DNA of 64,000 nt from Macrostomum lignano (taxonomy: Eukaryota). Of this stretch, positions 6,053 to 33,811 are shown piece after piece; position 1 is the first letter of the stretch; the number at the start of each line of letters is the position of its first letter. The translations under genes were made by a program, and so were the position numbers. The notes under the pieces were generated by a model, which did not search any database, was not told the origin of the DNA, and saw nothing but the letters and a program-made list of their open reading frames with translations. Location: NCBI GenBank assembly GCA_002269645.1, contig NIVC01001342.1, positions 186,001 to 250,000 on the forward strand, read 5' to 3'.

Positions 6053-9000
6053 TTAGAGTAAATAATTACGGCCTCCGGGAAGTGGGCGTTGGGATTCTCT
6101 TCCACGGCCACTGTCGCCAGCGCCTCCGCCTCGTGGGACGGAGTGACTCCCTCCACGGCCACTGTCGCCAGCGCCTCCGCCTCGTGGGACGGAGTGACTC
6201 CCTCCACGGCCACTGTCGCCAGCGCCTCCGACTCGTGGGACGGAGTGACTCCCTCCACGGCCACTGCCGCCAGCGCCTACGCTTTCTAGGATGGAGTGAC
6301 TCCCTCCACGGCCTCTGCCGCCAGCGCCTCCGCCTCGTTGGTCGAAGTGACTCCCTCCACGGCCTCTGCCGCCAGCGCCTCCGCCTCGTGGGACGGAGTG
6401 ACTCCCTCTGGCGCCAGCGCCTCTGCCTCGTGGGACGGAGTGACTCCCTCCACGGCCTCTGCCGCCAGCGCCTACGCTTTGTAGGATGGAGTGACTCCCT
6501 CCACGGCCTCTGCCGCCAGCGCCTCCGCCTCGTGGGACGGAGTGACTCCCTCTGGCGCCAGCGCCTCTGCCTCGTGGGACGGAGTGACTCCCTCCACGGC
6601 CTCTGCCGCCAGCGCCTACGCTTTGTAGGATGGAGTGACTCCCTCCACGGCCTCTGCCGCCAGCGCCTACGCTTTGTAGGATGGAGTGACTCCCTCCACG
6701 GCCTCTGCCGCCAGCGCCTCCGCCTCGTGGGACGGAGTGACTCCCTCTGGCGCCAGCGCCTCTGCCTCGTGGGACGGAGTGACTCCCTCCACGGCCTCTG
6801 CCGCCAGCGCCTACGCTTTGTAGGATGGAGTGACTCCCTCCACGGCCTCTGCCGCCAGCGCCTACGCTTTGTAGGATGGAGTGACTCCCTCCACGGCCTC
6901 TGCCGCCAGCGCCTACGCTTTGTAGGATGGAGTGACTCCCTCCACGGCCTCTGCCGCCAGCGCCTCCGCCTCGTTGGTCGAAGTGACTCCCTCCACGGCC
7001 TCTGCCGCCAGCGCCTCCGCCTCGTGGGACGGAGTGACTCCCTCTGGCGCCAGCGCCTCTGCCTCGTGGGACGGAGTGACTCCCTCCACGGCCTCTGCCG
7101 CCAGCGCCTACGCTTTGTAGGATGGAGTGACTCCCTCCACGGCCTCTGCCGCCAGCGCCTACGCTTTGTAGGATGGAGTGACTCCCTCCACGGCCTCTGC
7201 CGCCAGCGCCTACGCTTTGTAGGATGGAGTGACTCCCTCCACGGCCTCTGCCGCCAGCGCCTCCGCCTCGTGGGTCAAATTGACTTCCTCCACGGCCTCT
7301 GCCGCCAGCGCCTCCGCCTCGTGGGACGGAGTGACTCCCTCCACGGCCACTGCCGCCAGCGCCTACGCTTTCTAGGATGGAGTGACTCCCTCCACGGCCT
7401 CTGCCGCCAGCGCCTCCGCCTCGTTGGTCGAAGTGACTCCCTCCACGGCCTCTGCCGCCAGCGCCTCCGCCTCGTGGGTCAAAGTGACTCCCTCCACGGC
7501 CTCTGCCGCCAGCGCCTCCGCCTCGTGGGTCGAAGTGACTCCCTCCACGGCCTCTGCCGCCAGCGCCTCCGCCTCGTTGGTCGAAGTGACTCCCTCCACG
7601 GCCGCTGCCGCCAGCGCCTCCGCCTCGTGGGACGGAGTGACTCCCTCCACGGCCTCTGCCGCCAGCGCCTCCGCCTCGTGGGACGGAGTGACTCCCTCTG
7701 GCGCCAGCGCCTCCGCCTCGTGGGTCGAAGTGACTCCCTCCACGGCCTCTGCCGCCAGCGCCTACGCTTTGTAGGACGGAGTGACTCCCTCCACGGCCTC
7801 TGCCACCAGCGCCTCCGCCTCGTGGGTCAAAGTGACTTTCTCCACGGCCTCTGCCGCCAGCGCCTCCGCCTCGTGGGTCGAAGTGACTCCCTCCACGGCC
7901 TCTGCCGCCAGCGCCTCCGCCTCGTGGGTCAAAGTGACTCCCTCCACGGCCTCTGCCGCCAGCGCCTCCGCCTCGTTGGTCAAAGTGACTCCCTCCACGG
8001 CCTCTGCCGCCAGCGCCTCCGCCTCGTGGGTCGAAATGACTCCCTTCAAGGTCACTTTCGCCAGCGTCTTCGCCTCGTAGGATGGAGTGACTCCCTCCAC
8101 GGCGCCTGCGGCCAGCGCCTCCGCCTGGTGAGCCGTTGGGATTTCTTCCATCGCTATTCTCATTTTCCCGGTGCAGTACTAGGCGGGTCTCTTCAACGAA
8201 CTCGGTCGCTTTGTGCGCCAGTTCGTAGACACTCTTCGGAGCTTCAGTCGCAGTAAGCAATTCGTTCACGCTTCGCTCAAGTTCGTCAATATTAACTTGC
8301 AGCCTGTGCTTCTCCTCATTCACTGAACTGACCCATAGGATGATCCACGCTCCCTCTTCTGTTAGGATATTAAATTCTCTTCGTACAAAATAGTCGATTA
8401 ATTTCTGGTCCATATTGACGGTCGATTCAAAATTGTTTTCAAAATATTCTGTCACTTTTTCAATTGTGAGCTCGCTTGGATTTCGATTATAATGTTTTAA
8501 TTGGTCTCTTGGCTTAATAAAAGCACCAGTATCAGCATCTTGTCTTCTTTTGTAAGCGAAAGGAAAATATCGTGGAAGCCTAATTTTTTTAGCTGAATAA
8601 ATGAAATTTTTCCAAGCGTGGTCCAGGGCCCTGTGCGAGTTCTCCAGTGTCTGCTTGAGGAACTTCTTCTCTTGGTGGCGATCGGCTATGAGATGGTTCC
8701 GAGTGGCCGAGAGCAGTGCTTGACGTGGATACGGGTTCAGATCGAACTCCTCTTTCACCTTCTGGCAAATGTCCCGGAACTTAACTTCCGCTTCATTTAC
8801 TGCCTTTTCGTAGCTGTCCTGCATCGCTAGATCGAATTCCTCATCTGAACTCTGTAATTTTTTGTACAGCAACCTTTTCTTGATGAAGAAGGACGTTGAG
8901 CTTTTCCGCAGGTTCAGCAGCCGAGCAACCAGCTCATACTGATCCCTGTGGTGAAGTTTAGGATCGTTCCTCAGGCCCTGAAGAAACTTCAAAACTTGCT

Positions 9001-11578
9001 GGCCAGCATCTTTGCACTTCAGCCTGAGACACTCGAGTAGACCATCGCGTTTGGCTTCAGATTGAGTCTCAGGATGCTCCAGCTTGCTCATGATGGAGTC
9101 GGCAATCAGCTCGCGTCTGTGCGGCAGTTTCGAATCAAGCAGCTCGAACTTCTCCTTTGCAGCATCGAACTGCTCTAACTCCAGATGCAGAACTCCTTGC
9201 TGCTCAATCGACAACTGATGCGGATAATTTGTTGTGGCAGCAAGTAAGTCCTCAATCAGTTTCTTCCGCTGTTCACGAAGTTTAGCAATAACAGCAACTG
9301 CAGGAAGACTTCCGTTATCGATCTGTGCTATAAATTTAGCTAACATATTTTCATCTGAAGCTGAAAGCAGATCCTCAAGTTCATCAATTTTAAGCTCAGC
9401 ATTCTGATATTGCTGACGGAGTTTTCCTTTAGCAGCAGTCGCCCATTTCGGACACTGGTTTAGCGCAGCCGAGACGGAAGTAGCGCTGAACTTGCCGTTG
9501 AGTTGTTTTATAAATCTTTTCAACTGCACTTGCTTAGGATTTGACAGCAGATATCTGAGCTCGTCCTCCGTAAAAGTGTCACTCTCTGGATATTCCCGAT
9601 ATAACTTGAACATTGCTGCAGTCGCCCAGCTGTCCCGCTGACTTTCTAGCGCAGTCCGGACGGAATCAGCCGGGAATTTGGCATCCACAGCTCGCAGAAA
9701 TTCAAGGAACAGCTTTGAATTGTTAAGCAGATCACTGAGCCGCGCAAATGAAAGACTAATATTTGGCTGCGCTTTGATTTCACTGCAGCATTCTCTCACG
9801 GCGGCAGCAGAGTTCCTTTCATCGATGAAGGAAAGAATAAATCTTGCATCATCGTTGTCGCTCTGGGCTAGCTTTGCTTTCAATTTATTTTTCTGATACT
9901 CACTGAGACAACTGTGCCAATTGGGAGGCTCATGTCCAGCGTACTCATTCAGCGCCCATGCGATCCACTGCGCACCTTCAGCTAGGCGACCATTAATTGC
10001 CAGGAAGTAGCCCTTCTCTGCCACAACGTGTGCTTTATGGGCTTCCCTGCTGGGTCTTAGGGAGAGAGAATCGTAGCGCTGGCAGATCCATTTGATGTGA
10101 TCATATTTTGATTTGCGCTCTTGGCCTTTATCTAAGTCTCTTTGATTCTGATCCAAATCAATGAGCGATTTGGCCACCCAAATGTTGTTGTCGAGATCAG
10201 CTTTTTTAAAGTGTTTTCGAGCTTCCTTGATATTTCTTTCTTGCTTCAACAAGTAAAGTGCCATTTGATGGTGCAAGTCGGGGCTTTCATACCATTTGTC
10301 AGAGCCACTCTGTTGTAGAAGCTCTGACGCGAGCCGAAACACCTTTGCTGAAATCTCTACTGTTTTCATTCTATCCTCCCCTTTCAATTTTTTGCACAGT
10401 TTTCTGCACACACTCAAAACAATCACGAGCACGCAGAGGCATTTTGGGGCTGATGAGTCATCCTGCTGCTCGTTTCTAAGATCCTCATAGGCGTCCGCTA
10501 TCAAGTCCTTGGCTTTTGGACCGTCAGAATTCAGAGTTGCCTCAGCATAGCTGGCAAGAAGCAAAGGCAGAGTGTCCCTGTGACTCTCTCTGCAAATCTG
10601 TTCGGCTTTTTCCCACAACTCCAGCTCTTCTTTTTCGGCGGCGCATCTGTTGTCTCTGCTCCTGCGAATTCGAGACTTTGTGACGGCGAGTCCAAACAGC
10701 CCGTAAAAATTGCTTGAATCCTTTTCAGATGCTTCGGTGAAATACTCTTCAGCCTCAGTCAGTTTCCCGAAGCCGCAGCGCAGCAGAATCCAGCCCACCG
10801 AGCTGAGCTGCCGAGATGCCGAGGAATCATCTGAGGAATCATCATCATCTGCTGGATACCACAGACTCTCCAACTCTTCCACATCTCTTTGCCAATCCTT
10901 GGGGAAGCCGTCGCAGGACTGAAGAGATCGCAGCTTCAGCCGCGCTGTATTGATGAGGTACTTTGCGCTCACCCGATCTGGGGAACCCTCGAGCTGCTCA
11001 GCTTCACCAATAAGCTCCAGAGCTTGAGGCAGATCCGCCATATCAGGATGCGTGTGCAGACACGACAGAGCAACCAGGTACACCGTCTCGAGCCACGGCT
11101 CACTTTGTCGTTTCCATTCGAATTTCTCAATCAGGTCTTTGACGTCTTCAACTTCACTGATGTCGGGGAGCCGCTTAAAATGGCGCTCCATACCTACTGG
11201 ACTCAGCTGGTGCTCGACGCCTCTGACGATCTCGACTTCGAACCAGCGGCCAAGGTTCGAGTTGAGCTTCAGAGAATGCTCTGTGTCTTCGGGAAGCAAC
11301 TCGGTGCCATCAGTCTTCTTCAGCTTGAATGAAAGATCCGTCAAAGTCGCTCCGTCCGGAACTTTAAAATTACCGTCCGTCTCTATCATATTGATGGTGA
11401 CCTTTTTCTGCCAGATGCTGTCTCTCAAGTTTCTCAGATGCCCCTGCTGGATCACCTGATTATTGCCGAGCTCCGGGCAGTTTCCAGCCAATGCAATTCG
11501 CTCACCGGCTGCAGCGCTGCAGTTGAAGCTGATTGAAACTCCGACTGTCTCTGCGTTTTCGGTTCCCATGTCGGTCAT
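6053..11578 (-). CDS. Gene A: intronless 1841-aa protein; CBM20-like domain + IFIT-like TPR region + 3x helical repeat + putative HEPN-like domain + RGG-rich tail
   Basis: Uninterrupted 5.5-kb ORF from ATG 11578. CBM20-like GERIALAGNCPELGN..IWQKKV. IFIT-like motifs GWILLRCG, VFRLAS, LHHQMAL. ENSHRALD..YFPF..NEEKHR. The C-terminal ~650 aa are GGSHxxPRGGGAGGRGR repeats. Confidence 0.85.
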   Translation of the reverse strand: MTDMGTENAETVGVSISFNCSAAAGERIALAGNCPELGNNQVIQQGHLRNLRDSIWQKKVTINMIETDGNFKVPDGATLTDLSFKLKKTDGTELLPEDTEHSLKLNSNLGRWFEVEIVRGVEHQLSPVGMERHFKRLPDISEVEDVKDLIEKFEWKRQSEPWLETVYLVALSCLHTHPDMADLPQALELIGEAEQLEGSPDRVSAKYLINTARLKLRSLQSCDGFPKDWQRDVEELESLWYPADDDDSSDDSSASRQLSSVGWILLRCGFGKLTEAEEYFTEASEKDSSNFYGLFGLAVTKSRIRRSRDNRCAAEKEELELWEKAEQICRESHRDTLPLLLASYAEATLNSDGPKAKDLIADAYEDLRNEQQDDSSAPKCLCVLVIVLSVCRKLCKKLKGEDRMKTVEISAKVFRLASELLQQSGSDKWYESPDLHHQMALYLLKQERNIKEARKHFKKADLDNNIWVAKSLIDLDQNQRDLDKGQERKSKYDHIKWICQRYDSLSLRPSREAHKAHVVAEKGYFLAINGRLAEGAQWIAWALNEYAGHEPPNWHSCLSEYQKNKLKAKLAQSDNDDARFILSFIDERNSAAAVRECCSEIKAQPNISLSFARLSDLLNNSKLFLEFLRAVDAKFPADSVRTALESQRDSWATAAMFKLYREYPESDTFTEDELRYLLSNPKQVQLKRFIKQLNGKFSATSVSAALNQCPKWATAAKGKLRQQYQNAELKIDELEDLLSASDENMLAKFIAQIDNGSLPAVAVIAKLREQRKKLIEDLLAATTNYPHQLSIEQQGVLHLELEQFDAAKEKFELLDSKLPHRRELIADSIMSKLEHPETQSEAKRDGLLECLRLKCKDAGQQVLKFLQGLRNDPKLHHRDQYELVARLLNLRKSSTSFFIKKRLLYKKLQSSDEEFDLAMQDSYEKAVNEAEVKFRDICQKVKEEFDLNPYPRQALLSATRNHLIADRHQEKKFLKQTLENSHRALDHAWKNFIYSAKKIRLPRYFPFAYKRRQDADTGAFIKPRDQLKHYNRNPSELTIEKVTEYFENNFESTVNMDQKLIDYFVRREFNILTEEGAWIILWVSSVNEEKHRLQVNIDELERSVNELLTATEAPKSVYELAHKATEFVEETRLVLHRENENSDGRNPNGSPGGGAGRRRRGGSHSILRGEDAGESDLEGSHFDPRGGGAGGRGRGGSHFDQRGGGAGGRGRGGSHFDPRGGGAGGRGRGGSHFDPRGGGAGGRGRGESHFDPRGGGAGGRGRGGSHSVLQSVGAGGRGRGGSHFDPRGGGAGARGSHSVPRGGGAGGRGRGGSHSVPRGGGAGGSGRGGSHFDQRGGGAGGRGRGGSHFDPRGGGAGGRGRGGSHFDPRGGGAGGRGRGGSHFDQRGGGAGGRGRGGSHSILESVGAGGSGRGGSHSVPRGGGAGGRGRGGSQFDPRGGGAGGRGRGGSHSILQSVGAGGRGRGGSHSILQSVGAGGRGRGGSHSILQSVGAGGRGRGGSHSVPRGRGAGARGSHSVPRGGGAGGRGRGGSHFDQRGGGAGGRGRGGSHSILQSVGAGGRGRGGSHSILQSVGAGGRGRGGSHSILQSVGAGGRGRGGSHSVPRGRGAGARGSHSVPRGGGAGGRGRGGSHSILQSVGAGGRGRGGSHSILQSVGAGGRGRGGSHSVPRGRGAGARGSHSVPRGGGAGGRGRGGSHSILQSVGAGGRGRGGSHSVPRGRGAGARGSHSVPRGGGAGGRGRGGSHFDQRGGGAGGRGRGGSHSILESVGAGGSGRGGSHSVPRVGGAGDSGRGGSHSVPRGGGAGDSGRGGSHSVPRGGGAGDSGRGRESQRPLPGGRNYLL
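6099..8135. repeat. Coding minisatellite, 51-bp and 42-bp units (~40 copies), encoding the RGG tail of gene A
   Basis: Unit CCACGGCCTCTGCCGCCAGCGCCTCCGCCTCGTGGGACGGAGTGACTCCCT and a 42-bp variant. Both lengths are multiples of 3. Confidence 0.95.
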
Positions 11579-11940: not shown

Positions 11941-12574
11941 ATGAATAACCGGGTCATTCTCATCCCCTTTCTTTCCATTGGGGATTAAGCCAACCAGATC
12001 CCCTGATGAAACCTGGGTTCTCAACCAAACACTGCCAGAGTTGGCTGTTGCCAGCACACAACACTTACGCAGAAAATGCAGACGTAAAAGATTCTGTTCA
12101 GATTGAGGCGCAGCTGTCTGAGTCGGTCGCTCGCAAGCAGTGGGCTGGTCTGTCCAATCCTAGTTGATAAACAGAGTGAGTGAGTTAAATAGCGTCGCTT
12201 GACTGAGCAAATTTTCTCTCGCGCCAGAGACTCGGAGTTCCGGACAGAAAGATATACAGAGGGGAGACCCCTTGCGCGTACAACAGGCTTAGGAGAGGCC
12301 GTGAGTCTCTCATTGTTCTCGGGTAGCTGCGTTTTCTCTGCTGAGTGCGTGCATTGGCTGTGCCGAAGTTTCAGCTCGCTAAAAAACAATGGCACGGCTC
12401 GGCAGATGGAGAAAAACTCCGCGTTATAAGGCACTATAATTTGTGTTGCTGTCCTGATGACCAACTGCAACAGCTACCGTGAGAAACTCTTCATTCGGTG
12501 TCGAAATATAGGATAGGCCAACCAGACACTTCAAACCAGTCCCAATCTGCAGGTTAAGACCGGTGTAAATGTAG

Positions 12575-14920: not shown

Positions 14921-15257
14921 ATGTCCCAGTCCTCAGAATGTCAGGTCCCTGTCCCAGTCCTCAGAATGGCAGGTCCCTGTCCCAGTCCTCAGAATGTCAG
15001 GTCCCTGTCCCAGTCCTCAGAATGGCAGGTCCCTGTCCCAGTCCTCAGAATGTCAGGCCCCTGTCCCAGTCCTCAGAATGTCAGGTCCCTGTCCCAGTCC
15101 TCAGAATGTCAAGTCCCTGTCCCAGTCCTCAGAATGTCAGGTCCCTGTCCCAGTCCTCAGAATGTCAAGTCCCTGTCCCAGTCCTCAGAATGGCAGGTCC
15201 CTGTTCCAGTCCTTAGAATTTCAAGTCCCTGTTCCAGTCCTCAGAATGTCAGGTCCC
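14921..15257. repeat. 28-bp minisatellite (second copy 27170-27890)
   Basis: (GTCAGGTCCCTGTCCCAGTCCTCAGAAT)n. Confidence 0.95.
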
Positions 15258-16967: not shown

Positions 16968-19670
16968 TTAATTCCATCGGTAAAAATTTGGCACGACTAC
17001 GTCACCAGGTTCCATCAGCGATTCTTTGAAGTTTTCGTTGTTTTTTCCAGGCTCCAGGCCGAGCTGCCGCCAGGCAGCCATCATGACGACGAACCAGCAG
17101 GCGGCCACCTCCATGTGGCTTTTCCAGCACCAGTACCAGTCGCTGTGCATCACGTCGCACTCCTTGCTGACCAGCGAGGCCTCCATGCGGCCGCGGACGA
17201 TGGCGGCTGACTGGCGGAAAAGGCAGTGGTACCAGTCAAGAGTGGCATCGTTACCATCGATACTGATATTTATATTCGTGTCTTTGACCCAATGCGCCAG
17301 CTCAATGAGTGCATTCTTGTACTCTGGATCTGAGAAATTCTCAATGAGGAATTTGGACAAATTATTTTCTCCGGCAACCCTGAAGAGCTCGTACACGCTG
17401 CAGTGCTCAAGCGTTGGAATGTTTCTTTGAATTACCGGTACTTGTCTCGCGTGATACTTTCGGTTGAGACGCTGGCACACCGCCTCTCTGTTGTTCCGGA
17501 GACCTTCGCTTTCTCGTAGTCTGCAGTATTCAATGGCGCTTCGCGCGGGGGTTTCCTGCGGATTCTGCGGATTCAGCGGAATCGCTCCCTCATCTGCGAG
17601 GGCGTCTCCCCAGATGTCGTGATATTTATTAGTTCCGCTGGTCCTATTAGTGTTAGCGTTGTAAGACCCGTCTAAATTTATAATAGGCACCAGACACTGA
17701 GCGTATGTATCCTTGACGTTATCAAAGGTAACCTCTGGCTGATGAGGTAAATGCACTATCAGCGTGCGGTGCATCAGCGTGAGTATGTTGTCTCGCAGGA
17801 TCCGGCAAGTATCTGTCACAGGCAGTGAAATGCACACCCAGCATACTCCATCAAATGTGCACTGGAGGTCAAAGGTGTCGTGGTCTACTTGATCTGCAAT
17901 TTCGCGACGGAGTGTTGGCTTGAAAGTATTCCCATATTTAATCAGTCCGTTCTCGTTGAACAGCGCGAGTTGAAGGGTCAGAGCCTCAGGGTTGCCAACT
18001 TGGCCTTCCGCCTCAATCTGTGGCGGAAGCTTCCAAGTATTGTAGGGGCACTCCACCATCTTGAGAGTGACTTTTTTCACCCACGTTGAAAATCTCTCAC
18101 CGCTCATAATGCAATCCATTTCGTTGTCGGCCAGTTGGTCGAGGTTTCCCAGCGTGACGCAGTTGCCCAGGATGACAAGTTTTTCACTCGGCTTGGTCTT
18201 GTACTCCACTCGAATTTGAATGTTCACAGTCTTTTGCTTATCTGCAGAAGATACACGAACTCCTCTGTCACCCCAGTTGGTTTCCAGAGTGAACTGAGGC
18301 TTTCCGCCGTTTGCATTGAGTCGCACACTTCTAATGACATCGCAGCTTCTTTCATTGTTGGGTCTCAAGCGGTTTCTGTGGTCGTCGAACACAGCGAGAC
18401 CAAATGATAGATTGTCACCATTCGGAAGAGTTAGACGGCCATCAGGATGTTTCCGCATTAAGACATTGAGTTGTTGCTTCTCCCAAATGCTGTTGCGTTT
18501 GTACGTCATCAAATTTTTTCGGTCAGCTCGAACGTTTTTCCCGACAACAGCAATCATCTCACCAAAACTTGTGCTATAGTGAGTTCTTACAGCGATCTCG
18601 GCGTTTACAAATAGTTTTATATTCTGGTCATCGAAAGCGGATTCTATAGTAACACGATTCCCATCGTCCACGGTGAGCTGCACAGAACGTTGAGGAACAT
18701 TTTCTGGTTGCCACTGATCCTCGACATATTGGTAGAATCCGAATGCAAGATCAACTACATTCTTGGCTTGATCCAAAACAGACACTTGGTTGTTAGTGGA
18801 GTGAATTAACATAGTTATTTTTACATATTTCTGTCCAATACGCGTATTTCTATTAACTGTCAATTCCTGTTCCGTAGCAATCTCACGGCAGTTTCCCTTC
18901 ACAGCGATTCGTTCAACATCTTGAGGAATGGAGTTCGTTTGAAAAGTGACGTCACGTGTTGTGAACAAGTACAGAACATAGTTGTTAGGATTGACATCCA
19001 GGAGATAGGATTTTATACCCTTCCAAGTGAGAGTGACAGGTTGCCGGAAATCCTCAAAATTCCACTCTTCATTGTCATCAATGCGAGAACCAATGCTGAA
19101 TTTAAGATTGGTTTCTTCAACAGCAGAGGGCTCCGAACTATAAAGGGGTACTTTCCAATCTCCAGCTCTATTTTGAAACATTTCAATGCTGACTGCTTCT
19201 GTAGTCTGATGCTGGTCAAACCTCTCAAATGTCAGCTCAGCGCAGTTTCCCCGGACAGCAATCTGCTGATTATTTGCGGGAGCACGATATAGGAAGGTGA
19301 CTTTCACTGTCTCTGTTGGGAATACGCGATAGCCTGAGCCATCTGGGCTGAACCAAATCAGAAACCTGTTCTGTCTTGTCGCTTTTAAAACCACGCTGAG
19401 TGGCTGATCATGCTGCAGGTTCCAATCATCATTAGGTCCAGCGCGAACAAGTATTCTCACTGACAGATCTTGTCCGGAAACTTTGAGGCTTCCAGCATCA
19501 TCTCTCACCATTTTGATCTTGAGTTCTGTCTGCCAGACATTGTTTCCCAAGTCAGTAGCCAGTCGCTTGACATTCCGAAGCTCATTACAGTTTCCTTGAA
19601 CTCCAATTTGCGTTTCATCTGCTGCATTGAATTCAGTCCGGAAGACAACAGTAACATTAACTGTTGTCAT
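16968..19670 (-). CDS. Gene B: intronless 900-aa protein with five tandem CBM20-like domains and an unrecognised ~280-aa C-terminal domain
   Basis: ORF from ATG 19670. Five ~115-aa units begin with a VxVT/IxV strand then GNC/VVG-xxL (e.g. AVRTHYSTSFGEMIAVVG; IRVEYKTKPSEKLVILGNCVTLGN), matching the CBM20 N-terminal pattern. Confidence 0.85.
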   Translation of the reverse strand: MTTVNVTVVFRTEFNAADETQIGVQGNCNELRNVKRLATDLGNNVWQTELKIKMVRDDAGSLKVSGQDLSVRILVRAGPNDDWNLQHDQPLSVVLKATRQNRFLIWFSPDGSGYRVFPTETVKVTFLYRAPANNQQIAVRGNCAELTFERFDQHQTTEAVSIEMFQNRAGDWKVPLYSSEPSAVEETNLKFSIGSRIDDNEEWNFEDFRQPVTLTWKGIKSYLLDVNPNNYVLYLFTTRDVTFQTNSIPQDVERIAVKGNCREIATEQELTVNRNTRIGQKYVKITMLIHSTNNQVSVLDQAKNVVDLAFGFYQYVEDQWQPENVPQRSVQLTVDDGNRVTIESAFDDQNIKLFVNAEIAVRTHYSTSFGEMIAVVGKNVRADRKNLMTYKRNSIWEKQQLNVLMRKHPDGRLTLPNGDNLSFGLAVFDDHRNRLRPNNERSCDVIRSVRLNANGGKPQFTLETNWGDRGVRVSSADKQKTVNIQIRVEYKTKPSEKLVILGNCVTLGNLDQLADNEMDCIMSGERFSTWVKKVTLKMVECPYNTWKLPPQIEAEGQVGNPEALTLQLALFNENGLIKYGNTFKPTLRREIADQVDHDTFDLQCTFDGVCWVCISLPVTDTCRILRDNILTLMHRTLIVHLPHQPEVTFDNVKDTYAQCLVPIINLDGSYNANTNRTSGTNKYHDIWGDALADEGAIPLNPQNPQETPARSAIEYCRLRESEGLRNNREAVCQRLNRKYHARQVPVIQRNIPTLEHCSVYELFRVAGENNLSKFLIENFSDPEYKNALIELAHWVKDTNINISIDGNDATLDWYHCLFRQSAAIVRGRMEASLVSKECDVMHSDWYWCWKSHMEVAACWFVVMMAAWRQLGLEPGKNNENFKESLMEPGDVVVPNFYRWN

Positions 19671-22290: not shown

Positions 22291-22397
22291 GTAGTCGTCT
22301 TTGAAGTCAGCTTTGGCTGGACAATTAAACTAAAGGAATTAAGGCAGCATAAGCCTGTCCGGCCAGAAAGCCAGGTGTGGAGCGAGCGAAGGCTATG

Positions 22398-23501: not shown

Positions 23502-23764
23502 GAAGGCTATGAGCTGATGGGATTATTATTCTAAGACTCGGTGTAAACAATATTTTAATTCCACTAAGTTGAATTGAGACATGAACTGCAAATTTATCGG
23601 CTGAGTGCAAGGAAGCGCGTTTTATTTAATCTTAGCTCACGAGCGAACTAACACTATAGATGATATCTCGCCGATTGAATTGCATAATTCGGGTATTCTG
23701 TAGCAACGGAGACTTGATTTTTGATTGAGAAGGTGCGCAAAAAAATTCGTCCTTTTGTCTTGAA

Positions 23765-24823: not shown

Positions 24824-24838
24824 GTAAGAAATATTCTT

Positions 24839-25654
24839 TCACAATTCTTTCACGGAGTTGCTGATGGCGTTTCTCGCTGCTTTGTGCACCGAAGTCTCTC
24901 CGTTGAGGCCTTTCAGCATGAAGACGAGCGACCCGAGCTGCTCCTTGATGAACTGCATGGAGTCTTCGCCTTGCTCAAGTGCAGCCAGGTGGATAGGAGT
25001 GCTGCCCTGATCATCTTTCTCCATCAGACAGTCTGAGCCGCACTCGCTGACCAGCCACTTGAGGGCCGAGTTGCTGCTTTCATTTGCAGCGGCACAATGA
25101 ATAGCAGTTCGGCCTACAGATCCTTTCTGAAAGAAGCAGTCGGGTCCGAAAAGCGACTTGAAGAACTGCATGGAGTCTGAGCCCTGACAGCCCGCTGTCA
25201 TGTGCACGGGTGAGTCACCATTCGAATCGACTGCACTCAGAAAACCGGGTCCTTTCTTTCTGGCAATCCACTTCAGAATTGATTTGCTGCGCTTGTTTGC
25301 AGCCGCGAAGAACGCAATAGAACTGTTGCACCTGCCTTTCAGCTCGAAGCATTCCGCTCCTATGCGGCTGTGGATGAACTTCATGGAGTTCTCGCCTTGA
25401 AAAATAGCAACCCAATGCAGTGGCGCGTCGCCATACTGGTCTCTGGCTTGAGTCAGACAGGAGGGGCCGAGCCTCTCAACCAGCACCTTCAGACAGTCGA
25501 GTCCGTAAGGCTTCCAAGCAAGATGATGAGCCAAAGATTCCTCAAACTGCTCAGTCTTTACCGTCAGGTTGCTGCCGACCCGCCTGCACAGGCGCAGCAG
25601 CTGCTCGCGGTCGTCGGCATCCAGAGCAGCGCTCAGTTGCTCAGCTGTGGCCAT
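24839..25654 (-). CDS. Ankyrin-repeat protein, truncated paralog (271 aa from ATG 25654)
   Basis: ~6.5 ankyrin repeats (GDAPLHWVA, GDSPVHMTA, GRTAIHCAA, GSTPIHLAA), collinear with 42003-43373 but ending at NSVKEL*. Confidence 0.8.
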   Translation of the reverse strand: MATAEQLSAALDADDREQLLRLCRRVGSNLTVKTEQFEESLAHHLAWKPYGLDCLKVLVERLGPSCLTQARDQYGDAPLHWVAIFQGENSMKFIHSRIGAECFELKGRCNSSIAFFAAANKRSKSILKWIARKKGPGFLSAVDSNGDSPVHMTAGCQGSDSMQFFKSLFGPDCFFQKGSVGRTAIHCAAANESSNSALKWLVSECGSDCLMEKDDQGSTPIHLAALEQGEDSMQFIKEQLGSLVFMLKGLNGETSVHKAARNAISNSVKEL

Positions 25655-26105
25655 CGCCTGGGCGGATGAAAATCTTTGTCCGAAAAAGTTGCTTCTGGCT
25701 GTCCCTGTTAGCGTCCGAGAGCCGGTGCTGGCATGCAGTGCCGCACAGCTTATTCCAGCTTGGAACCCAGCCGAAGTGAAACTACTTGAGCTCGACTGAC
25801 GCTGCTTGACCAACTGCTCAGTTCTGAATGCGCAGAGCTATTTAATCTCTTTTTTGATGCAAGAATTCTCTGTACACTGGCGTTCTGCATCTCTATTGAG
25901 TGCTCAATAAGGCACAAAGAGAGTACTTTAGACTCATATGAGTGTGCAAAACCTATGAGGGAGGAAAATTCTGTTTTGATTTTATCATTGTTGTCGCGTA
26001 GCTGAGTCTTCTCTGCTGAGTGCGCGCACTGGCTGTGCCGAAGTTTCAGCTTGATAATAAACAATGGCACGGCTCGGCACATGGAGAAAAACTGCAACGG
26101 CTACG

Positions 26106-26354
<249 letters not shown>

Positions 26355-26367
<13 letters not shown>

Positions 26368-26850
26368 TGACACAAGTTGCGTTTCAATATTTTCAGAAGC
26401 AGAGGACAGAAGGCGCTGCCGCTCCCCGTCCGCATGCACGTCCGGCAGCCATCCAGCTCAGTGTCCCGTGCGCAGTCCTCATCGAGCTCCATCATCGGTG
26501 TGGCCAGCTTCCCCCTCATGAAGCCGTAGAAGGCCATCGCCATCGCAGTCTCGGCAGTCATCACCACGCAGGGGACGTACAGACTGTTGGACTCGCCGAG
26601 CACCGGCTGCAGGATCGGCTGGCCGATGGGATATTTCTTCATCAGGGATTTAGCCAAGTCACCAAGGACAACACCGGTCGCCCAGATGGTGAGCAGGATG
26701 CCCATGACAAGGTTTTTAGCTGCCGCGGGGCCACCCGGGACATGAGCTCGTATCCCGCAGCCACTACCAGGGCCTTGGCGACTCCGTCCGCAGCCGACAC
26801 GGATGCGTAGCCGGCCCGGACCAGCTGCGGTCTCAGCTCGCCGCCAGCCG
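26355..26850 (-). pseudogene. GC-rich hydrophobic ORF fragment(s) of unknown family, apparently frameshifted
   Basis: Coding-like GC3-rich codons (MGILLTIWATGVVLGDLAKSLMKKYPIGQPILQP..MAFYGFMRGKL). A protein-like stretch lies upstream in another frame (GVAKALVVAAGYELMSRV). Confidence 0.3.
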
Positions 26851-26861
26851 CAGCGGCCCAG

Positions 26862-26967
26862 CGGTTCCAGCCAATCAGAGCGGCCCAGCGGTTTAAGCCA
26901 ATCAGAGCGGCCCAGCGGTTTTCAGCCAATCAGAGAGGCCCAGCGGTTCCAGCCAATCAGAGCGGCC
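26862..26967. repeat. ~28-bp tandem repeat, each unit carrying a CCAAT box
   Basis: GCGGCCCAGCGGTT..AGCCAATCAGA x3-4. Confidence 0.8.
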
Positions 26968-27169
26968 CGACACGCCAGCAGCAGAGCGGCTCCGCAGTAA
27001 AAACCGAAAAGAGAAGAGAAGAGAGAGGAGGCAAGAGATTGAATGTGAAAAGAGATAAGAAAGAAGATGAAGAGGAGAAGAGAGGAGAGAGGGTAGTGAA
27101 GATGAGAGGGGGAGAGCAGCCAGATTGCTATTGCAAAGTTTCAAAGTTTGCCAACCCCTGTCTTATAAT

Positions 27170-27890
27170 GTCCCAGTCCTCAGAATGTCAGGTCCCTGTC
27201 CCAGTCCTCAGAATGTCAGGTCCCTGTCCCAGTCCTCAGAATGTCAAATCCCTGTTCCAGTCCTCACAATGTCAGGTCCCTGTTCCAGTCCTCAGAATGT
27301 CAGGTCCCTGTTCCAGTCCTCAGAATGTCAGGTCCCTGTCCCAGTCCTCAGAATGTCAGGTCCCTGTCCCAGTCCTCAGAATGTCAAATCCCTGTTCCAG
27401 TCCTCACAATGTCAGGTCCCTGTTCCAGTCCTCAGAATGTCAGGTCCCTGTTCCAGTCCTCAGAATGTCAGGTCCCTGTTCCAGTCCTCAGAATGTCAGG
27501 TCCCTGTTCCAGTCCTCAGAATGTCAGGTCCCTGTCCCAGTCCTCAGAATGTCAAATCCCTGTCCCAGTCCTCAGAATGTCAGGTCCCTGTCCCAGTTCT
27601 CAGAATGTCAGGTCTGTTCCAGTCCTCAGAATGTCAGGTCCCTGTCCCAGTCCTCAGAATGTCAGGTCCCTGTCCCAGTCCTCAGAATGTCAAATCCCTG
27701 TTCCAGTCCTCACAATGTCAGGTCCCTGTTCCAGTCCTCAGAATGTCAGGTCCCTGTTCCAGTCCTCAGAATGTCAGGTCCCTGTTCCAGTCCTCAGAAT
27801 GTCAGGTCCCTGTTCCAGTCCTCAGAATGTCAGGTCCCTGTTCCAGTCCTCAGAATGTCAGGTCCCTGTTCCAGTCCTCAGAATGTTCAA
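27170..27890. repeat. 28-bp minisatellite, expanded copy
   Basis: Same unit as 14921-15257. Confidence 0.95.
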
Positions 27891-28499
27891 TGCTCCGTAT
27901 GCTTGCAATGGCTACTGCAATTATTTAATTTCACATTACCACATTAGCCCATAGCAACCAACCGGGGTCAGGGCTGGGGGCAGCTGACCCTACTTTGCTG
28001 AGAAAAGCACTCGTTGACCTCACCGAAGCTGCTTACCATTTGTTAAAACAGATTCAATTCCGGAAATCCAGGCAGCTCGTATCAGACTGGCATCGCCATG
28101 GCAGCCATCTCAGCTGCTTCATCAGCTGCTGCATTTTGGCTCGGGGCCAAACTGCATTTTCGGCGATGCCTGCGCACAGCTGATGCCGGCCCGGCTGTAG
28201 TGCGGGAATTGCAGCTTGCGTTTCGACTCGCTTGATTGGCGACCGCAAGCTGACTTTTGTGTGCTTTGGCTGATGGAGTAAATTTAATTATTGGCTGCGG
28301 AGTCTGCAGATCTTTCCGGAAATGGGGGGCATCGCTTCCGGCTGTGGAAACTGGCACCCTGAACTGCTGGGCTTTGCTGTGTCCGAATGCGGTGTAATAA
28401 TAGTGCTGATTATGGACTTTGATCTTTAATCTGAGTGTTCACAATGCCAGTGATATTGATTGATTGCTGGCCTACTGCTCCAAGGTATGAGAAGTTTAC

Positions 28500-29285
28500 T
28501 CTCTCCCTACACTCCCTCTCTCCCTGCACTCCCTCTCTCCCTACACTCCCTCTCTCCCTACACTCCCTCTCTCCCTACACTCCCTCTCTCCCTACACTCC
28601 CTCTCTCCCTACACTCCCTCTCTCCCTACACTCCCTCTCTCCCTACACTCCCTCTCTCCCTACACTCCCTCTCTCCCTACACTCCCTCTCTCCCTACACT
28701 CCCTCTCTCCCTACACTCCCTCTCTCCCTTCACTCTCTCTGCACTTAAATGCATGCAGTTGATTGGCAGGTCAATTGGTTTCTTTCAGTCGAATTTCCTG
28801 GAATTGAGACCGACTGTCGCATCATGTTTGCTTAGCAATCTCTGCACTTTTTAAACTAAATGTTACTAGCAGTAGTCTGATGGCAAGCAAAGTTTCAGTG
28901 AATTTTTAACTGCATGCTTCTTTTGGATCAGAAATCTCTCGCAATGTCCATAATCACTGAAATAATGAAGCGAGGACAGAGACCTGCACTGCACTGTCTA
29001 CCTCTCCCTGCACTCTGTCTACCTCTCCCTGCACTCTGTCTACCTCTCCCTGCACTCTGTCTACCTCTCCCTGCACTCTGTCTACCTCTCCCTGCACTCT
29101 GTCTACCTCTCCCTGCACTCTGTCTACCTCTCCCTGCACTCTGTCTACCTCTCCCTGCACTCTGTCTACCTCTCCCTGCACTCTGTCTACCTCTCCCTGC
29201 ACTCTGTCTACCTCTCCCTGCACTCTGTCTACCTCTCCCTGCACTCTGTCTACCTCTCCCTGCACTCTGTCTACCTCCTCCTGCC
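28500..29285. repeat. 17-bp (CTCCCTCTCTCCCTACA) and 21-bp (CTGTCTACCTCTCCCTGCACT) minisatellites inside a segment duplicated at ~38040-38720
   Basis: Shared unique spacer TTTCAGTCGAATTTCCTGGAATTGAGACCGACTGTCGCATCATGTT at ~28785 and ~38380. Confidence 0.9.
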
Positions 29286-30699
29286 TACTCTCCCTGTCTA
29301 CTTCCTACATTACATTCTGTTAAATCTCTGAACGCACAATTTAGTCAAACATTCTACAAGCCAACGCTGGATAGCAGTACATTTGATATTTCAGATCGTC
29401 TTGGCGCAGTGGACGACAATAAAGGTGAAAAATTTTTTTTCCAAAAACCGCTTAAAATGTTTTAAGCTTAAATTACACCATTTTACCATTTTAATAGCAG
29501 ACATTAGCATAAATAATTAGGAGTCTGATGATAGTTGAACTTCGCGTTGTTTAAAATAAATAAATAAATAAATAATTAAGACAAATTTTCAACGCCACAA
29601 TGATTCAAATATCAGGCTCATGCAGTAAGTACTAAAATGTATTTGTCCAATACATGAGTCAGAAAACTTTTTTCACTTCAGGGCCAGCTATGGAATCTAG
29701 CGCATGGCTGCGGGCCAGAGAAAGGAGAAAGGGGGAGAGAGGGGAGAGAGGGGAGAGAGGGGAGAGAAGGGGAGGGAGAGTAGGGAGAAGGGAGAGGAGA
29801 GAAGAGAGGAGAGAGGGGAGAGGGAGAGGGGAGAGGGAGAGGAGGAGAGGGGAGAGAGAGAAGCAGAGGGGAGAGGGAGAGGAGGAGAGAGGGGAGAGGG
29901 AGAGGAGGACAGGGGGAGAGAGAGGAGGAGAGAGGGGAGAGAAGGGGAGGGAGAGTAGGGAGAAGGGAGAGGAGAGAGGAGAGGAGAGAGGGGAGAGGGA
30001 GAGGAGGACAGGGGGAGAGAGAGGAGGAGAGAGGGGAGAGAAGGGGAGGGAGAGTAGGGAGAAGGGAGAGGAGAGAGGAGAGGAGAGAGGGGAGAGGAGA
30101 GAGGGGAGAGGGAGAGGGGAGAGGGAGAGGAGGAGAGGGGAGAGAGAGAAGCAGAGGGGAGAGGGAGAGGAGGAGAGAGGGGAGAGGGAGAGGAGGACAG
30201 GGGGAGAGAGAGGAGGAGAGAGGGGAGAGGGAGAGGAGGAGAGAGGTTGGGAGAGGAGAGTTGGGAGATGAGAGGAGAGAGTAGAAAAGAGGGAGAGAAG
30301 GAGAGAGAAAAGGGGAAAGGAGAGAGAAGGGAGAGGAGAGAGGAGAGGAGAGAGAGCTGAGAAGAGACAGACCTTGTGACCTTGAGCGGGCCGGATTGCT
30401 ATTGTGAAGTTTCAAAAGGCCGGATAGAGAGGCTTCGTGGGCCGCATCAGAGCCCTGGTCTAATATATGAGATTTTTGACGCTACAGCTCAGATAAGAGC
30501 TCCTTCTCTCATCACGGTGAAGTGAAATATTTTATTTTTTAGGGTGTTCTTAGTCTTAAAGACTTCTACTACTATGGCTCTGGAATGACCTTCTGTAATC
30601 AGTGTAAGAGCCAAATAACCAAGGCTGGCGAATTCCACGAACTTTTCCTGATGACTGATTTGTGGAGGGGATCGGATATCCTTTGTTAGGGTTCGATGG

Positions 30700-30930
30700 G
30701 ATATCGAATAACATATGGGATTTGTTATATCCAAATGGTTGGCTACTTTCTCATCATATGATATTGAATAACACAATGGGATCAGCATCATGGGATATTG
30801 AATAACACAATGGGATCAGCATCATGGGATATTGAATAACACAATGGGATCAGCATCATGGGATATTGAATAACACAATGGGATCAGCATCATGGGATAT
30901 TGAATAACACATTGGGATCAGCATCAGGGG
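30700..30930. repeat. 34-bp minisatellite (also 31680-31815)
   Basis: (CATGGGATATTGAATAACACAATGGGATCAGCAT)n. Confidence 0.9.
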
Positions 30931-31506
30931 ATACTGAATTATTCCACTGTGTCAGCATCAGTATTATATACGAGATCAAGAAATTTACCTCATAAGCACT
31001 AATCTTTTGCTATCGGCAGAAATTCGGCTGAAAAGGCCCGTCATCTTCATTCAGCTTATTTCCAAAATTCCTATTTTTTCCGGGCCTTACCTAGCTGCAA
31101 AAGCTGTAAAATACTCGGAGTTTTCAGACTGATCCAAGCAGATTTTGTCTGTCCATCTTTACTCCTGCATTCCCTAATTTAAGTTGAGTCTCTTTGTTAG
31201 TAAATACTAAATTATGTAGCTATAGGCAATGTTGTAACAAAAAAGTGGCGCTGATGGGATAACAGAAGCAATAAACAGTGGCGCTGATGGGATAACAGAA
31301 GCAATAAACAGTGGCACTGATGGGATAACAGAAGCAATAAACAGTGGCGCTGATGGGATAACAGAAGCAATAAACAGTGGCGCTGATGGGATAACAGAAG
31401 CAATAAACAGTGTCGCTAATGGGATAACAGAAGCAATAAACAGTGTCGCTGTCAAGTATCTCTTGCTAAAGAGTGGCTTTTGTTCTTTTATAATCCGAGA
31501 CTGTTC

Positions 31507-31675
31507 TTAATTCCATCGGTAAAAATTTGGCACGACTACGTCACCAGGTTCCATCAGCGATTCTTTGAAGTTTTCGTTGTTTTTTCCAGGCTCCAGGCCG
31601 AGCTGCCGCCAGGCAGCCATCATGACGACGAACCAGCAGGCGGTCACCTCCATGTGTCTCTTCCAGTTCCAGTAC
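31507..31675 (-). pseudogene. Orphan copy of the last ~55 codons of gene B lying downstream of gene C
   Basis: Near-identical to 16968-17130 (..AAWRQLGLEPGKNNENFKESLMEPGDVVVPNFYRWN*), including the B 3' flank. Confidence 0.85.
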
Positions 31676-31861
31676 AGCATCATGGGATATTGAATAACAC
31701 AATGGGATCAGCATCATGGGATATTGAATAACACAATGGGATCAGCATCATGGGATATTGAGTGATACAATGGGATCAGCATCATGGGATACTGAATGAT
31801 ACAATGGGATCAGCATCAGTTTTATAATACGAGGTCATGAAATTTTCATCATGAGCACAAA

Positions 31862-33811
31862 TTATTCTTGCCATCGGTAGAAGTTCGGTACGAAAGGCTC
31901 AGTATTTTCCTCGTATTCCTTCAGCTTATTTTTAAAATTCTCATTGCTTTCTCCAAGCCGCCGCCAGGCAGCCATCATGACGACGAACCAGCAGGCGGCC
32001 ACCTCCATGTGGCTTTTCCAGCACCAGTACCAGTCGCTGTGCATCACGTCGCACTCCTTGCTGACCAGCGAGGCCTCCATGCGGCCGCGGACGATGGCGG
32101 CTGACTGGCGGAAAAGGCAGTGGTACCAGTCAAGAGTGGCATCGTTACCATCGATACTGATATTTATATTCGTGTCTTTGACCCAATGCGCCAGCTCAAT
32201 GAGTGCATTCTTGTACTCTGGATCTGAGGAATTCTCAATGAGGAATTTGGACAAATTATTTTCTCCGGCAACCCTGAAGAGCTCGTACACGCTGCAGTGC
32301 TCAAGCACTGGAATGTTTCTTTGAATTACCGGTGATTGTCTCGCGTGATACTTTCGGCTGAGACGCTGGACCACCGCTTCTCTGTTATTCTGGAGATGTC
32401 TGCTTTTTCGCAGTTCGCAGTATTCAATGGCGCTTCGTATTGCTGGGACGTTCTGATTCTGCGGAATCGCTTCCTCATCTGCGAGAGCGTCTCCCCAGAT
32501 ATCGTGATATTTATTAGTTCCGCTGGTCTTTGTCGTCTTTTTGTCGTAAGACCCGGCTGACGTAATTATGGGAACCAGACACTGAGCGTATGTATCCTTC
32601 ACTTTATCAAAGGTAACCTGAGGCAAATGCACTATCAGCGTGCGGTGCATCAGCGTGAGTATGTTGTCTCGCAGGATCCGGCAAGTATCTGTGACAGGCA
32701 GTGAAATGCACACCCAGCATACTCCATCAAATGTGCACTGCATGTCAAAAGTGTCGAGTTCTACTTGATCTGCAATTTCGCGCCGGAGTGTTGGCTTGAA
32801 AGTATTCGTCCCATATTTAATCAGTCGGTTCTCGTTGAACAGCGCGAGTCTAAGGGTCAGAGCCTCATCTCCGTCTCCCGCACCTATCTGTGGCGGAAGC
32901 TTCCAAGTATTGTCGCAGCACTCCACCATCTTAAGAGTGACTGTCCTCGCCCACGTGGAAAAGCTCTCGCCGCTCATAATGCAATTCATTTCGTTGTCGG
33001 CCAGTTGGTCGAGGTTTCCCAGCTTGACGCAGTTGCCCAGGATGACAAGTTTTTCACTCGGCTTGGTCTTGTACTTCACTCGAATGTGAATTTTCACAGG
33101 CTTTTGCTCATCTGCAGAAAATAAGCGAACTTTGCTGTCACCCCAGTTGGTTTCCAGAGTGAACCGAGGCTTTCCGCCGTTTGCATTGAGTGGCACACTT
33201 CTAAGGACATCACAGCTTCTTTCATTGTTGGGTCTCAAGCGGTTTCTGTGGTCGTCGAACACAGCGAGACCAAATGACAGATTGACACCATTCGGAAGAG
33301 TTAGACGGCCATCAGGATGTTTCCACATTAAGACATTGAGTTGTTGCTTCTCCCAAATGCTGTTGCGTTTGTACTTCATCAAGTTTTTTTTGTCAGCTCG
33401 AACGTTTTCGTTGCCAAGCTCATCGCAGCTCCCGACAACAGCAACCTTCTCACCAAAACTTGTGCTATAGTGAGTTCTTACAGCGATCTCGGCGTTTACA
33501 AATAGTTTTATATTCTGGTCATCGAAAGCGGATTCTATAGTAACACGATTCCCATCGTCCACGGTGAGCTGCACAGAACGTTGAGGAACATTTTCTGGTT
33601 GCCACTGATCCCCGACATACTGGTAGAATCTGAATGCAAGATCATCTCTCACCATGTTGATCGTGAGTTCTGTCTGCCAGACATTGTTTCCCAAGTTGGC
33701 CAGTGGCCTGACATTCCGAAGCTCATTACAGTTTCCTTTAATTCCGATTTGCGCTCCATCTGCTGCATAGAATTTAGTCCGGAAGAGAACAGTAACATTA
33801 AACTCCGCCAT
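31862..33811 (-). CDS. Gene C: intronless 649-aa paralog of gene B with three CBM20-like domains and the same C-terminal domain
   Basis: ATG at 33811 (MAEFNVTVLFRT). Collinear with B except for a 747-bp in-frame deletion. Canonical-looking CBM20 start AVRTHYSTSFGEKVAVVGSCDELGN. Confidence 0.87.
   Translation of the reverse strand: MAEFNVTVLFRTKFYAADGAQIGIKGNCNELRNVRPLANLGNNVWQTELTINMVRDDLAFRFYQYVGDQWQPENVPQRSVQLTVDDGNRVTIESAFDDQNIKLFVNAEIAVRTHYSTSFGEKVAVVGSCDELGNENVRADKKNLMKYKRNSIWEKQQLNVLMWKHPDGRLTLPNGVNLSFGLAVFDDHRNRLRPNNERSCDVLRSVPLNANGGKPRFTLETNWGDSKVRLFSADEQKPVKIHIRVKYKTKPSEKLVILGNCVKLGNLDQLADNEMNCIMSGESFSTWARTVTLKMVECCDNTWKLPPQIGAGDGDEALTLRLALFNENRLIKYGTNTFKPTLRREIADQVELDTFDMQCTFDGVCWVCISLPVTDTCRILRDNILTLMHRTLIVHLPQVTFDKVKDTYAQCLVPIITSAGSYDKKTTKTSGTNKYHDIWGDALADEEAIPQNQNVPAIRSAIEYCELRKSRHLQNNREAVVQRLSRKYHARQSPVIQRNIPVLEHCSVYELFRVAGENNLSKFLIENSSDPEYKNALIELAHWVKDTNINISIDGNDATLDWYHCLFRQSAAIVRGRMEASLVSKECDVMHSDWYWCWKSHMEVAACWFVVMMAAWRRLGESNENFKNKLKEYEENTEPFVPNFYRWQE

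Follow-up and report, generated by a model that had tools for sequence, protein, structure and literature searches.

Gene content of the locus

We examined a 64,000-nucleotide stretch of the Macrostomum lignano genome (assembly GCA_002269645.1, contig NIVC01001342.1, positions 186,001 to 250,000; hereafter, the window) and focused on three of its genes, which we call A, B and C and which begin with the same domain of about 110–135 amino acids (aa), hereafter the module. Judging from the sequences, B and C belong to an undescribed and fast-changing gene family that is found almost only in M. lignano, while A is an otherwise unrelated neighbour that acquired or retained one module. The architecture of the family, as seen in the protein sequences, is an N-terminal array of one to five or more modules followed by one to three orphan helical domains of about 280 aa. 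On the minus strand, the genes were found in the order ankyrin-repeat gene, C, second ankyrin-repeat gene, B and A (Table 1). The coding sequences of A, B and C were uninterrupted, as an earlier note on this DNA had stated. Given that M. lignano genes have a mean of 4.9 introns (PMC5730564), uninterrupted coding sequences of 2–5.5 kb are atypical for this genome.

Table 1. Features of the window; positions are counted from its first nucleotide (ORF, open reading frame; HMM, hidden Markov model; LTR, long terminal repeat; LINE, long interspersed nuclear element; RT, reverse transcriptase).
Feature	Position	Strand	Basis
Gene A, uninterrupted 1841-codon ORF, not in public annotation	6053..11578	-	ORF list; stop codon 6053-6055
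A aa 11-127: single CBM20-like module	11198..11548	-	B/C-module HMM, Pfam, AlphaFold2/Foldseek
A aa 128-1150: Leu/Glu/Ala/Lys-rich centre, ~1000 aa, presumably helical	8129..11197	-	Composition
A aa 1151-1841: ~39 tandem 17-aa RGG-rich units (GSH..[RQ]GGGAGGRGRG)	6056..8128	-	Tandem Repeats Finder, unit count
Gene B, uninterrupted 900-codon ORF, not in public annotation	16968..19670	-	ORF list
B aa 5-615: five tandem modules (5-118, 121-237, 238-355, 356-475, 481-615)	17826..19658	-	HMM iteration, six-frame scan
B aa 616-900: orphan alpha-helical C-terminal domain (HDIWG ... AAIVRGRxEAxLVS ... WxxHxEAAxxWF ... PxFYxW)	16971..17825	-	HMMER search, domain mapping
Gene C, uninterrupted 649-codon ORF, annotated single-exon gene in GCA_002269645.1	31862..33811	-	ORF 31862-33835, ATG at 33811
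C aa 5-370: three modules (5-105, chimeric; 106-232; 238-370)	32702..33799	-	HMM iteration, six-frame scan
C aa 371-649: orphan helical C-terminal domain as in B	31865..32701	-	Domain HMM
Stray duplicate 3' end of a B-type gene (final 55 codons), close behind the stop codon of C	31510..31674	-	tblastn, 94.5% to B aa 846-900; C-terminal-domain HMM, 2.3e-20
Ankyrin-repeat gene, 312 aa, single exon, annotated; between C and B	24839..25777	-	Pfam Ank_2, 2e-22
Ankyrin-repeat gene, 466 aa, single exon, annotated; upstream of C	42003..43403	-	Pfam Ank_2, 4e-28
LTR-retrotransposon pol (RT, RNase H, integrase zinc-finger and core domains) and DUF7041 ORF; GC 61-69%; truncated by the window start	2-3549	-	
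ORF starting in a 21-nt tandem repeat and ending in an RVT_1 domain; LINE-like fragment between B and the ankyrin gene	21541-23451	+	
RIO kinase domain exon of a multi-exon conserved gene	53486-54046	-	
Piezo cap and THU9/anchor domain exons of a multi-exon conserved gene	57540-58073 and 61538-62215	-	

A module shared by genes A, B and C

We detected one copy of the module in A, five in B and three in C. A six-frame HMM scan of the window recovered exactly these nine modules and none outside the three genes, in agreement with the earlier note, which had proposed a common N-terminal domain in these copy numbers. The consensus given there (VxVxF..ExIAxxGNCxELxN...W....I.M.....G..KxP) also agreed with that of our alignment. 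With an HMM trained on the modules of B and C only, residues 11–116 of A covered almost the whole HMM and scored 65 bits, while the best of 1000 shuffled sequences reached 8.4 bits; the module of A is thus a genuine homologue of those of B and C. The BLASTP comparison of A with C gave an E-value of 1.5e-7. According to the sequences, the module is all that A has in common with B and C, and the centre of A and the C-terminal domain of B and C were unrelated in hhalign (0.4% probability).

The identity between modules was 22–31%. A family-specific insertion of 15–25 aa follows the fourth conserved block and corresponds to the "MxxxxxGxxKxP" segment described earlier, and the core GxxxxxGNCxxLGN was kept in several modules. 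Module 4 of B lacked the 'SCDELGNE' core (CxELGN), which C and the paralogue P0001 retained. Module 1 of C was a chimera of B module 1 (aa 1–57) and B module 3 (aa 307–355), created by an in-frame deletion of 249 aa, and this loss is the footprint of unequal recombination between repeats. A word-indexed protein search with an alignment of 12 modules gave no matches; it also missed the known members and was therefore uninformative.

Relationship of the module to CBM20

The Pfam family CBM_20 (PF00686) was the only one matched by the module in the A, B and C proteins. With a threshold of 23.3 bits, C passed (37.8 bits), and B and A scored below it (19.2 and 14.9 bits, respectively). When the modules were searched in isolation, four out of the nine matched CBM_20 (best E-value 8.9e-5; module of A, 3.9e-4), and no other family was convincing. 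We also compared the module profile with an alignment of canonical CBM20s checked against PDB entries (starch-binding domain, SBD, of the Aspergillus niger glucoamylase, 1ac0; human GPCPD1, 2z0b). The hhalign match had a probability of 86% and an E-value of 5e-6 over the first 33 columns only, from beta-strand 1 to the LGNW motif, and the joint MAFFT alignment was collinear along the entire domain. The AlphaFold2 model of the A module was all-beta (pLDDT 77). In the Foldseek search of the PDB its top match was the CBM20 of GPCPD1 (2z0b), the best matches included further CBM20 entries (2vn4, 6fhv, 1qho, 1b90 and 1kul), and the CBM20 fold neighbours included fungal glucoamylases, a maltogenic amylase and a beta-amylase. 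These CBM20 matches were weak (E-values of 6e-3 to 6e-2, TM scores of 0.4–0.5), and other beta-sandwiches, among them cytolysin domain 4 and a CBM41, scored alike. Searches of the PDB sequences recovered no CBM20 with the module profile and nothing meaningful with modules 2–3 of C.

The Pfam score of C, the matches of four single modules, the hhalign probability and the collinear joint alignment argue for a module that is probably a very divergent, CBM20-derived domain. The CBM20-like label of the earlier note is thus the most plausible one, given a Pfam score above the threshold for C (though not for A and B), an hhalign match over a part of the domain and weak fold matches.

Loss of the canonical ligand-site tryptophan

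In the joint alignment, the Trp of the LGxW motif was substituted in all nine copies (by N, V, E, L or others). This position corresponds to W543 of the A. niger glucoamylase, W32 of laforin and W293 of STBD1, and the motif GNW reads GNN in A, RNV in B1, GNE in C module 2 and GNL in B5/C3, exactly the missing key Trp that had been noticed before. The Trp is needed for amylose binding by STBD1, and the Lafora disease-associated mutation W32G of laforin hits the same position (PMC4076837). The equivalent of glucoamylase W563 was retained in six out of the nine modules (A, B1, B4/C2, B5/C3 and C1) and that of W590 in four (only B1, B2, B3 and C1). We take W563 to belong to site 2 and W590 to site 1 of the glucoamylase SBD.

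A different reading of these substitutions is that carbohydrate binding was lost altogether and that the modules are protein–protein repeats, either spacers like those of the Ig and FN3 type or protein-binding units within large intracellular scaffolds. The absence from all nine copies of a Trp that STBD1 and laforin need for amylose speaks for it, and so do the low identity between modules, their family-specific insertion and the high ratios of nonsynonymous to synonymous substitution (dN/dS) among recent copies given below; in addition, the CBM20 of STBD1 has been reported in protein–protein interactions (PMC4076837). However, equivalents of W563 and W590 and the core GxxxxxGNCxxLGN survive in several modules, and we regard the protein-repeat reading, the main rival of the targeting role proposed below, as rather unlikely.

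Human CBM20 proteins (GPCPD1, STBD1 and laforin) are single-copy. The modules of the window resemble these animal CBM20s in domain length class and in the order of the conserved blocks; in particular, the GPCPD1 segment 'GEVFAICGSCDALGNW' resembles the module core 'GExhxhxGscxxLGN', as seen for example in C module 2 ('GEKVAVVGSCDELGNE'), and 2z0b was the best Foldseek match. Laforin and GPCPD1 are further alike in that the module is N-terminal in an intracellular protein, which is also predicted for A, B and C. Unlike the animal CBM20s, the modules have lost the LGxW Trp, carry the 15–25-aa insertion and form arrays of up to five per protein, and only one of the three window proteins (C) exceeded the Pfam threshold. 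The partners of the animal domains are a phosphatase, a phosphodiesterase, or a membrane anchor with an Atg8-interacting motif, whereas in B and C the partner is the orphan helical domain. Among microbial SBDs (A. niger glucoamylase 1ac0; CBM20s of CGTase and beta-amylase), the likeness consists in the collinear alignment and in the W563 and W590 equivalents; the differences are the missing W543, site-2 Tyr residues that are not conserved and the lack of a catalytic glycoside-hydrolase domain. N-terminal tandem CBM20s have a counterpart in plant enzymes such as potato DPE2, which has two N-terminal SBDs (PMC9920598), but those are canonical starch-binding modules on a glucanotransferase, and here up to five degenerate modules are joined to a helical domain in an animal.

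Genes B and C and their orphan helical domain

B and C are paralogues with 77% identity over 671 aa. B shared 84% of its residues with P0001, an annotated M. lignano protein, and its closest relative was named "hypothetical protein BOX15_Mlig008397g1". In both genes the module array is followed by a C-terminal domain of about 280 aa, the HMM of which matched B at 3e-110 and C at 8e-109. We searched 1.84 billion representative proteins with a HMMER profile of B, C and P0001 and obtained 11 matches, all of them through the last ~280 residues: seven M. lignano hypothetical proteins (529–1848 aa; P0007, counted among the seven, has 4007 aa and resembles a chimeric prediction), gene C of the window, and three unnamed ENA or Logan contigs. 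In several of these proteins the C-terminal domain is preceded by the module, and in two proteins it is present two or three times. The R-G-R-x-E of "AAIVRGRxEA" and the Trp of the following W-F motif were invariant, and the Phe of that motif was conserved at 90% or more.

The AlphaFold2 model of the C-terminal domain was all-helical (pLDDT 68, pTM 0.77). We found no Pfam match for this domain and nothing meaningful with its profile among the PDB sequences, and the Foldseek search of the model gave no match either in the PDB (best E-value 1.2) or in BFVD (best E-value 0.78). The earlier description of an unknown C-terminal domain therefore still applies, and the BFVD result does not hint at these intronless genes having come from a virus. 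Neither B nor C showed a domain of any known signalling or enzymatic effector, and the NCBIfam scan of A and B returned nothing.

We considered B and C as tail-anchored membrane proteins and rejected this, since the hydrophobic helix conserved in them lacks the length for it and is too polar (maximum Kyte-Doolittle value 1.2). Two distant members, P0011 (aa 319–356) and P0008 (aa 880–899), have hydrophobic tails (Kyte-Doolittle values of 2.5 and 1.6, respectively) that are candidate membrane anchors, and none was found in A, B or C. The family is not wholly intron-free: the genes of P0006 and P0008 (at loci L009 and L010) exceed the coding length and translate non-colinearly.

Gene A

The C-terminal tail of A is composed of 40% Gly and 15% Arg and is encoded by a 51-nt tandem repeat (Tandem Repeats Finder period 51, 40.7 copies). 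Over this repeat the opposite strand has an open frame as well, so that openness counts here as weak evidence of coding, and the tail is less securely coding than the remainder of the gene. Low-complexity RGG or glycine- and arginine-rich (GAR) tails occur in fibrillarin and nucleolin; that of A is similar in composition and in its recurring GRGRG and RGGG motifs, and what sets it apart is its makeup of about 39 near-identical 17-aa units, derived from a young 51-nt repeat, and its fusion to a module and a presumably helical orphan region.

The centre of A had been taken for an IFIT-like sensor in the earlier note, and our searches did not bear this out. IFIT structures are deposited in the PDB, and a phmmer search of aa 121–1150 against all PDB sequences gave, at E-values up to 10, a chance ankyrin match only and no IFIT. 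In Pfam, the centre matched only TPR_2, with an E-value of 0.022 and 15 bits, below the threshold of 27. The word-indexed protein-database search with aa 1–1150 gave no matches, and the BLASTP self-comparison of the centre showed no significant internal repeats. By eye, aa 620–679 and 680–739 form a putative 60-aa duplication. Finally, a crude Kyte-Doolittle test detected no signal-peptide-like N-terminus and no transmembrane window in A, B or C, and the three are thus probably soluble intracellular proteins.

Duplicated loci and turnover of the cluster

We found an A-type gene, a B-type gene and ankyrin genes together at two other loci. Locus L004 (contig NIVC01000672.1) contained, in this order, an ankyrin gene with 97.7% identity to the 466-aa gene of the window, the family gene P0003, and A', which was 96.5% identical to aa 1–372 of A (the part available), module included. 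At locus L001 (contig NIVC01001049.1) the order was ankyrin gene, P0001, another ankyrin gene, A''. Its copy of the 466-aa ankyrin gene lay upstream of the B-type gene and was 96.9% identical over the 290 aa present. A'' (L001:21023-22697) begins exactly at the end of the module of A and has an interruption of ~840 bp and an in-frame stop codon, and from its sequence it is probably a dead pseudogene.

In nucleotide alignments, L001 and L004 were collinear duplicates of the window locus, with flanks that were 90–98% identical. The redundancy of the DV1 assembly is known (PMC5730564). As all three loci go back to a single ancestral locus by duplication, the recurrent linkage is inherited and is not independent evidence, and we rejected the linkage of A-type and B-type genes as proof of a functional system. 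At six loci of more distant family members we found no A-type or ankyrin gene within 10 kb. The linkage of A, B-type and ankyrin genes is thus explained by local and segmental duplication, and the sensor-to-effector system of the earlier note loses the support that linkage had seemed to give it.

The content between the flanks was variable. At L004:10001-11590, the two-module P0003 replaces the 17.7-kb C–ankyrin–B segment of the window (17222-34972), and the flanks are 92–98% identical. P0003 had 35–36% protein identity to B and C, with a synonymous divergence (dS) of about 1.6–2, and most of its coding DNA had no nucleotide similarity to the window, while its last 255 nt were 85% identical to the 3' end of B. 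As far as the alignments go, this pattern suggests gene conversion, alternative arrangements that have been maintained for long, or differential loss. Taken together, the P0003 replacement, the recombinant module 1 of C and the stray 3' fragment downstream of C show rapid structural turnover by unequal crossing-over or gene conversion. Sequence comparison shows a cluster that expands and contracts by tandem duplication and by unequal recombination between modules.

Beside the genes we observed other repeated DNA. An element of ~300 bp was found 0.4–0.7 kb upstream of A (11945-12245) and 1.7–2.0 kb upstream of C (35478-35819) with 75% identity, and also ~0.7–1.6 kb upstream of P0001 and P0003 (77%). 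A second element, of 117 bp, was shared with 89% identity between 12302-12418, upstream of A, and 25977-26093, about 165–280 bp upstream of the 312-aa ankyrin gene. Both upstream elements may be regulatory DNA that the genes share, or may be left over from duplication. Tandem-repeat families with 33-nt, 28-nt and 17-nt units were found at corresponding positions beside B and C (16305-16906 and 31240-31451; 14922-15257 and 27169-27886; 28499-28740 and 38040-38344), which fits a duplicated unit made of an ankyrin gene, a family gene and repeats.

Annotation and selection

The GenBank annotation contained C, both ankyrin genes, P0001 and P0003. A and B were absent from it, and their exact proteins were not in the protein collection. 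This annotation was built from RNA-seq transcript assemblies, and transcripts overlapping repeat annotations were excluded (PMC5730564), which may explain why A, with a 2-kb tandem repeat inside, and B, which abuts a 33-nt repeat array, are missing. For B and the distant P0003 the dN/dS was 0.26–0.42, for A and its L004 copy 0.41, and for B and P0001 0.68. Across the recent paralogues (B, C and P0001) it ranged from 0.63 to 0.79, values that are compatible with relaxed constraint and that indicate fast or relaxed evolution of these coding sequences. In all whole-gene and domain-level comparisons the ratio was below 1; a single short sub-segment, codons 1–57 of module 1 between B and C, gave 1.16.

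These values, and the gaps in the annotation, also bear on whether A and B could be functionless young duplicates or pseudogenes that drift neutrally and decay in a repeat-rich region. Such decay would agree with the absence of both genes from an RNA-seq-based annotation, with the ratios among B, C and P0001, with the core motif lost in module 4 of B, with the stop codon and insertion in A'', and with a window crowded with tandem repeats and retroelements. However, stop-free ORFs of 5.5 kb and 2.7 kb are unexpected in neutral sequence, the ratios stay below 1 in every whole-gene and domain comparison and are lowest (0.26–0.42) at deep divergence, the omission of A and B may stem from the exclusion of repeat-overlapping transcripts, and the sister genes C, P0001 and P0003 were annotated from transcripts. 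We therefore treat A, B and C as real genes and consider neutral decay of A and B very unlikely.

Genomic neighbourhood

The intergenic spaces of the window were filled by about 37 tandem-repeat arrays. This density fits a repeat-rich genome, in which simple and tandem repeats make up 15% and LTR retrotransposons 21% (PMC5730564). The wider neighbourhood contained an LTR-retrotransposon pol, a LINE-type reverse-transcriptase fragment, a RIO-kinase exon and Piezo exons. The RIO kinase and Piezo genes are multi-exon genes, in contrast to the intron-free genes of the cluster. An ORF at 36581-36961 on the plus strand encoded a phospholipase-A2-like motif of the parvovirus VP1 type (…GYSFTGPGTNL…HDKRY…), which matched Phospholip_A2_4 with an E-value of 2e-4 and 22 bits (threshold, 23.9); by its sequence, this ORF could derive from an endogenous virus or match by chance.

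The earlier note had listed ankyrin, RIOK3-like and F-type lectin genes as an innate-immunity neighbourhood. We recovered the ankyrin genes and the RIO-kinase exon, while Pfam found no F-type lectin in the large ORFs or in most of the other ORFs of at least 80 aa, although short exons could escape such a scan. No feature identifies the region as immune, and with Piezo, RIO kinase and retroelements as neighbours that characterization is not supported.

This neighbourhood was part of a larger model, in which the module would act as a homotypic adaptor, in the way of CARD and death domains, and would couple an IFIT-like sensor (A) to effectors (B and C) in innate immunity. The three genes are indeed adjacent and have the module in common, the adjacency was found again at L004 and, in degenerate form, at L001, and the variation in copy number, with a divergent paralogue between conserved flanks, recalls immune loci. 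Against this, A has no IFIT similarity and a TPR match below threshold, the recurrence of linkage comes from duplicates, the six loci of distant members have no A-type or ankyrin neighbour, the genes around the cluster are those named above with no lectin in the ORFs scanned, and B and C carry no known signalling or enzymatic effector domain. CARD and death domains are six-helix bundles and the module is all-beta, so that the comparison could only be a functional analogy. Our results contain nothing in favour of a homotypic adaptor function, and we judge the adaptor model highly improbable.

A proposed role for the module

Our preferred reading, which we put forward tentatively and with somewhat less than even confidence, is that of a shared intracellular targeting module with multivalent binding that is carried by otherwise unrelated proteins. 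The module would be a ligand-targeting unit inherited from glycogen- or starch-binding CBM20s, which would no longer use the canonical site 1 because the Trp is lost in all copies. Several modules in a row would then bind a polymeric target multivalently and by avidity; the target could be glycogen, a different glycan or the repetitive surface of a protein. The activity would come from the helical domain in B and C and from the helical and RGG part in A. The three proteins would be linked by a common destination and not by binding to each other.

Several points weigh against this targeting role. A and B are missing from the annotation, and the dN/dS of the recent paralogues leaves room for relaxed constraint. 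The CBM20 assignment of single modules is marginal, with no CBM20 recovered among PDB sequences, Foldseek E-values of 6e-3 or worse at a TM score of ~0.5, and an hhalign match over 33 columns. With the site-1 Trp gone, the module may bind no carbohydrate at all. Lastly, A'' has no module, so either an A-type protein does not strictly need one or this copy is dead.

A more specific scenario, which we think has little chance of being correct, would be a flatworm-specific intracellular recognition system. A Trp-less CBM20 would have been turned into a fast-diversifying array module and joined to a helical domain of new fold, C–ankyrin–B and P0003 would be alternative haplotypes or homeologues that have long been maintained, in the manner of immune or allorecognition loci, and A, an RGG scaffold tagged with a module, would be drawn to the same target.

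In the literature, we found no paper that ties Macrostomum to CBM20 or the starch-binding domain or that names these gene IDs, and they were absent from the supplements of PMC5816591. The practical significance of the locus is modest for now; M. lignano is tractable (transgenesis, RNAi), and the function is therefore directly testable. The analysis defines an orphan helical domain (HDIWG ... AAIVRGRxEA ... WF) without sequence or fold relatives. If the CBM20 assignment is true, M. lignano would represent an animal lineage in which the glycogen- or starch-binding CBM20 fold was multiplied into arrays, stripped of its key Trp and fused to two different orphan partners, and the locus would offer a clean natural case of a carbohydrate-binding module that was repurposed.

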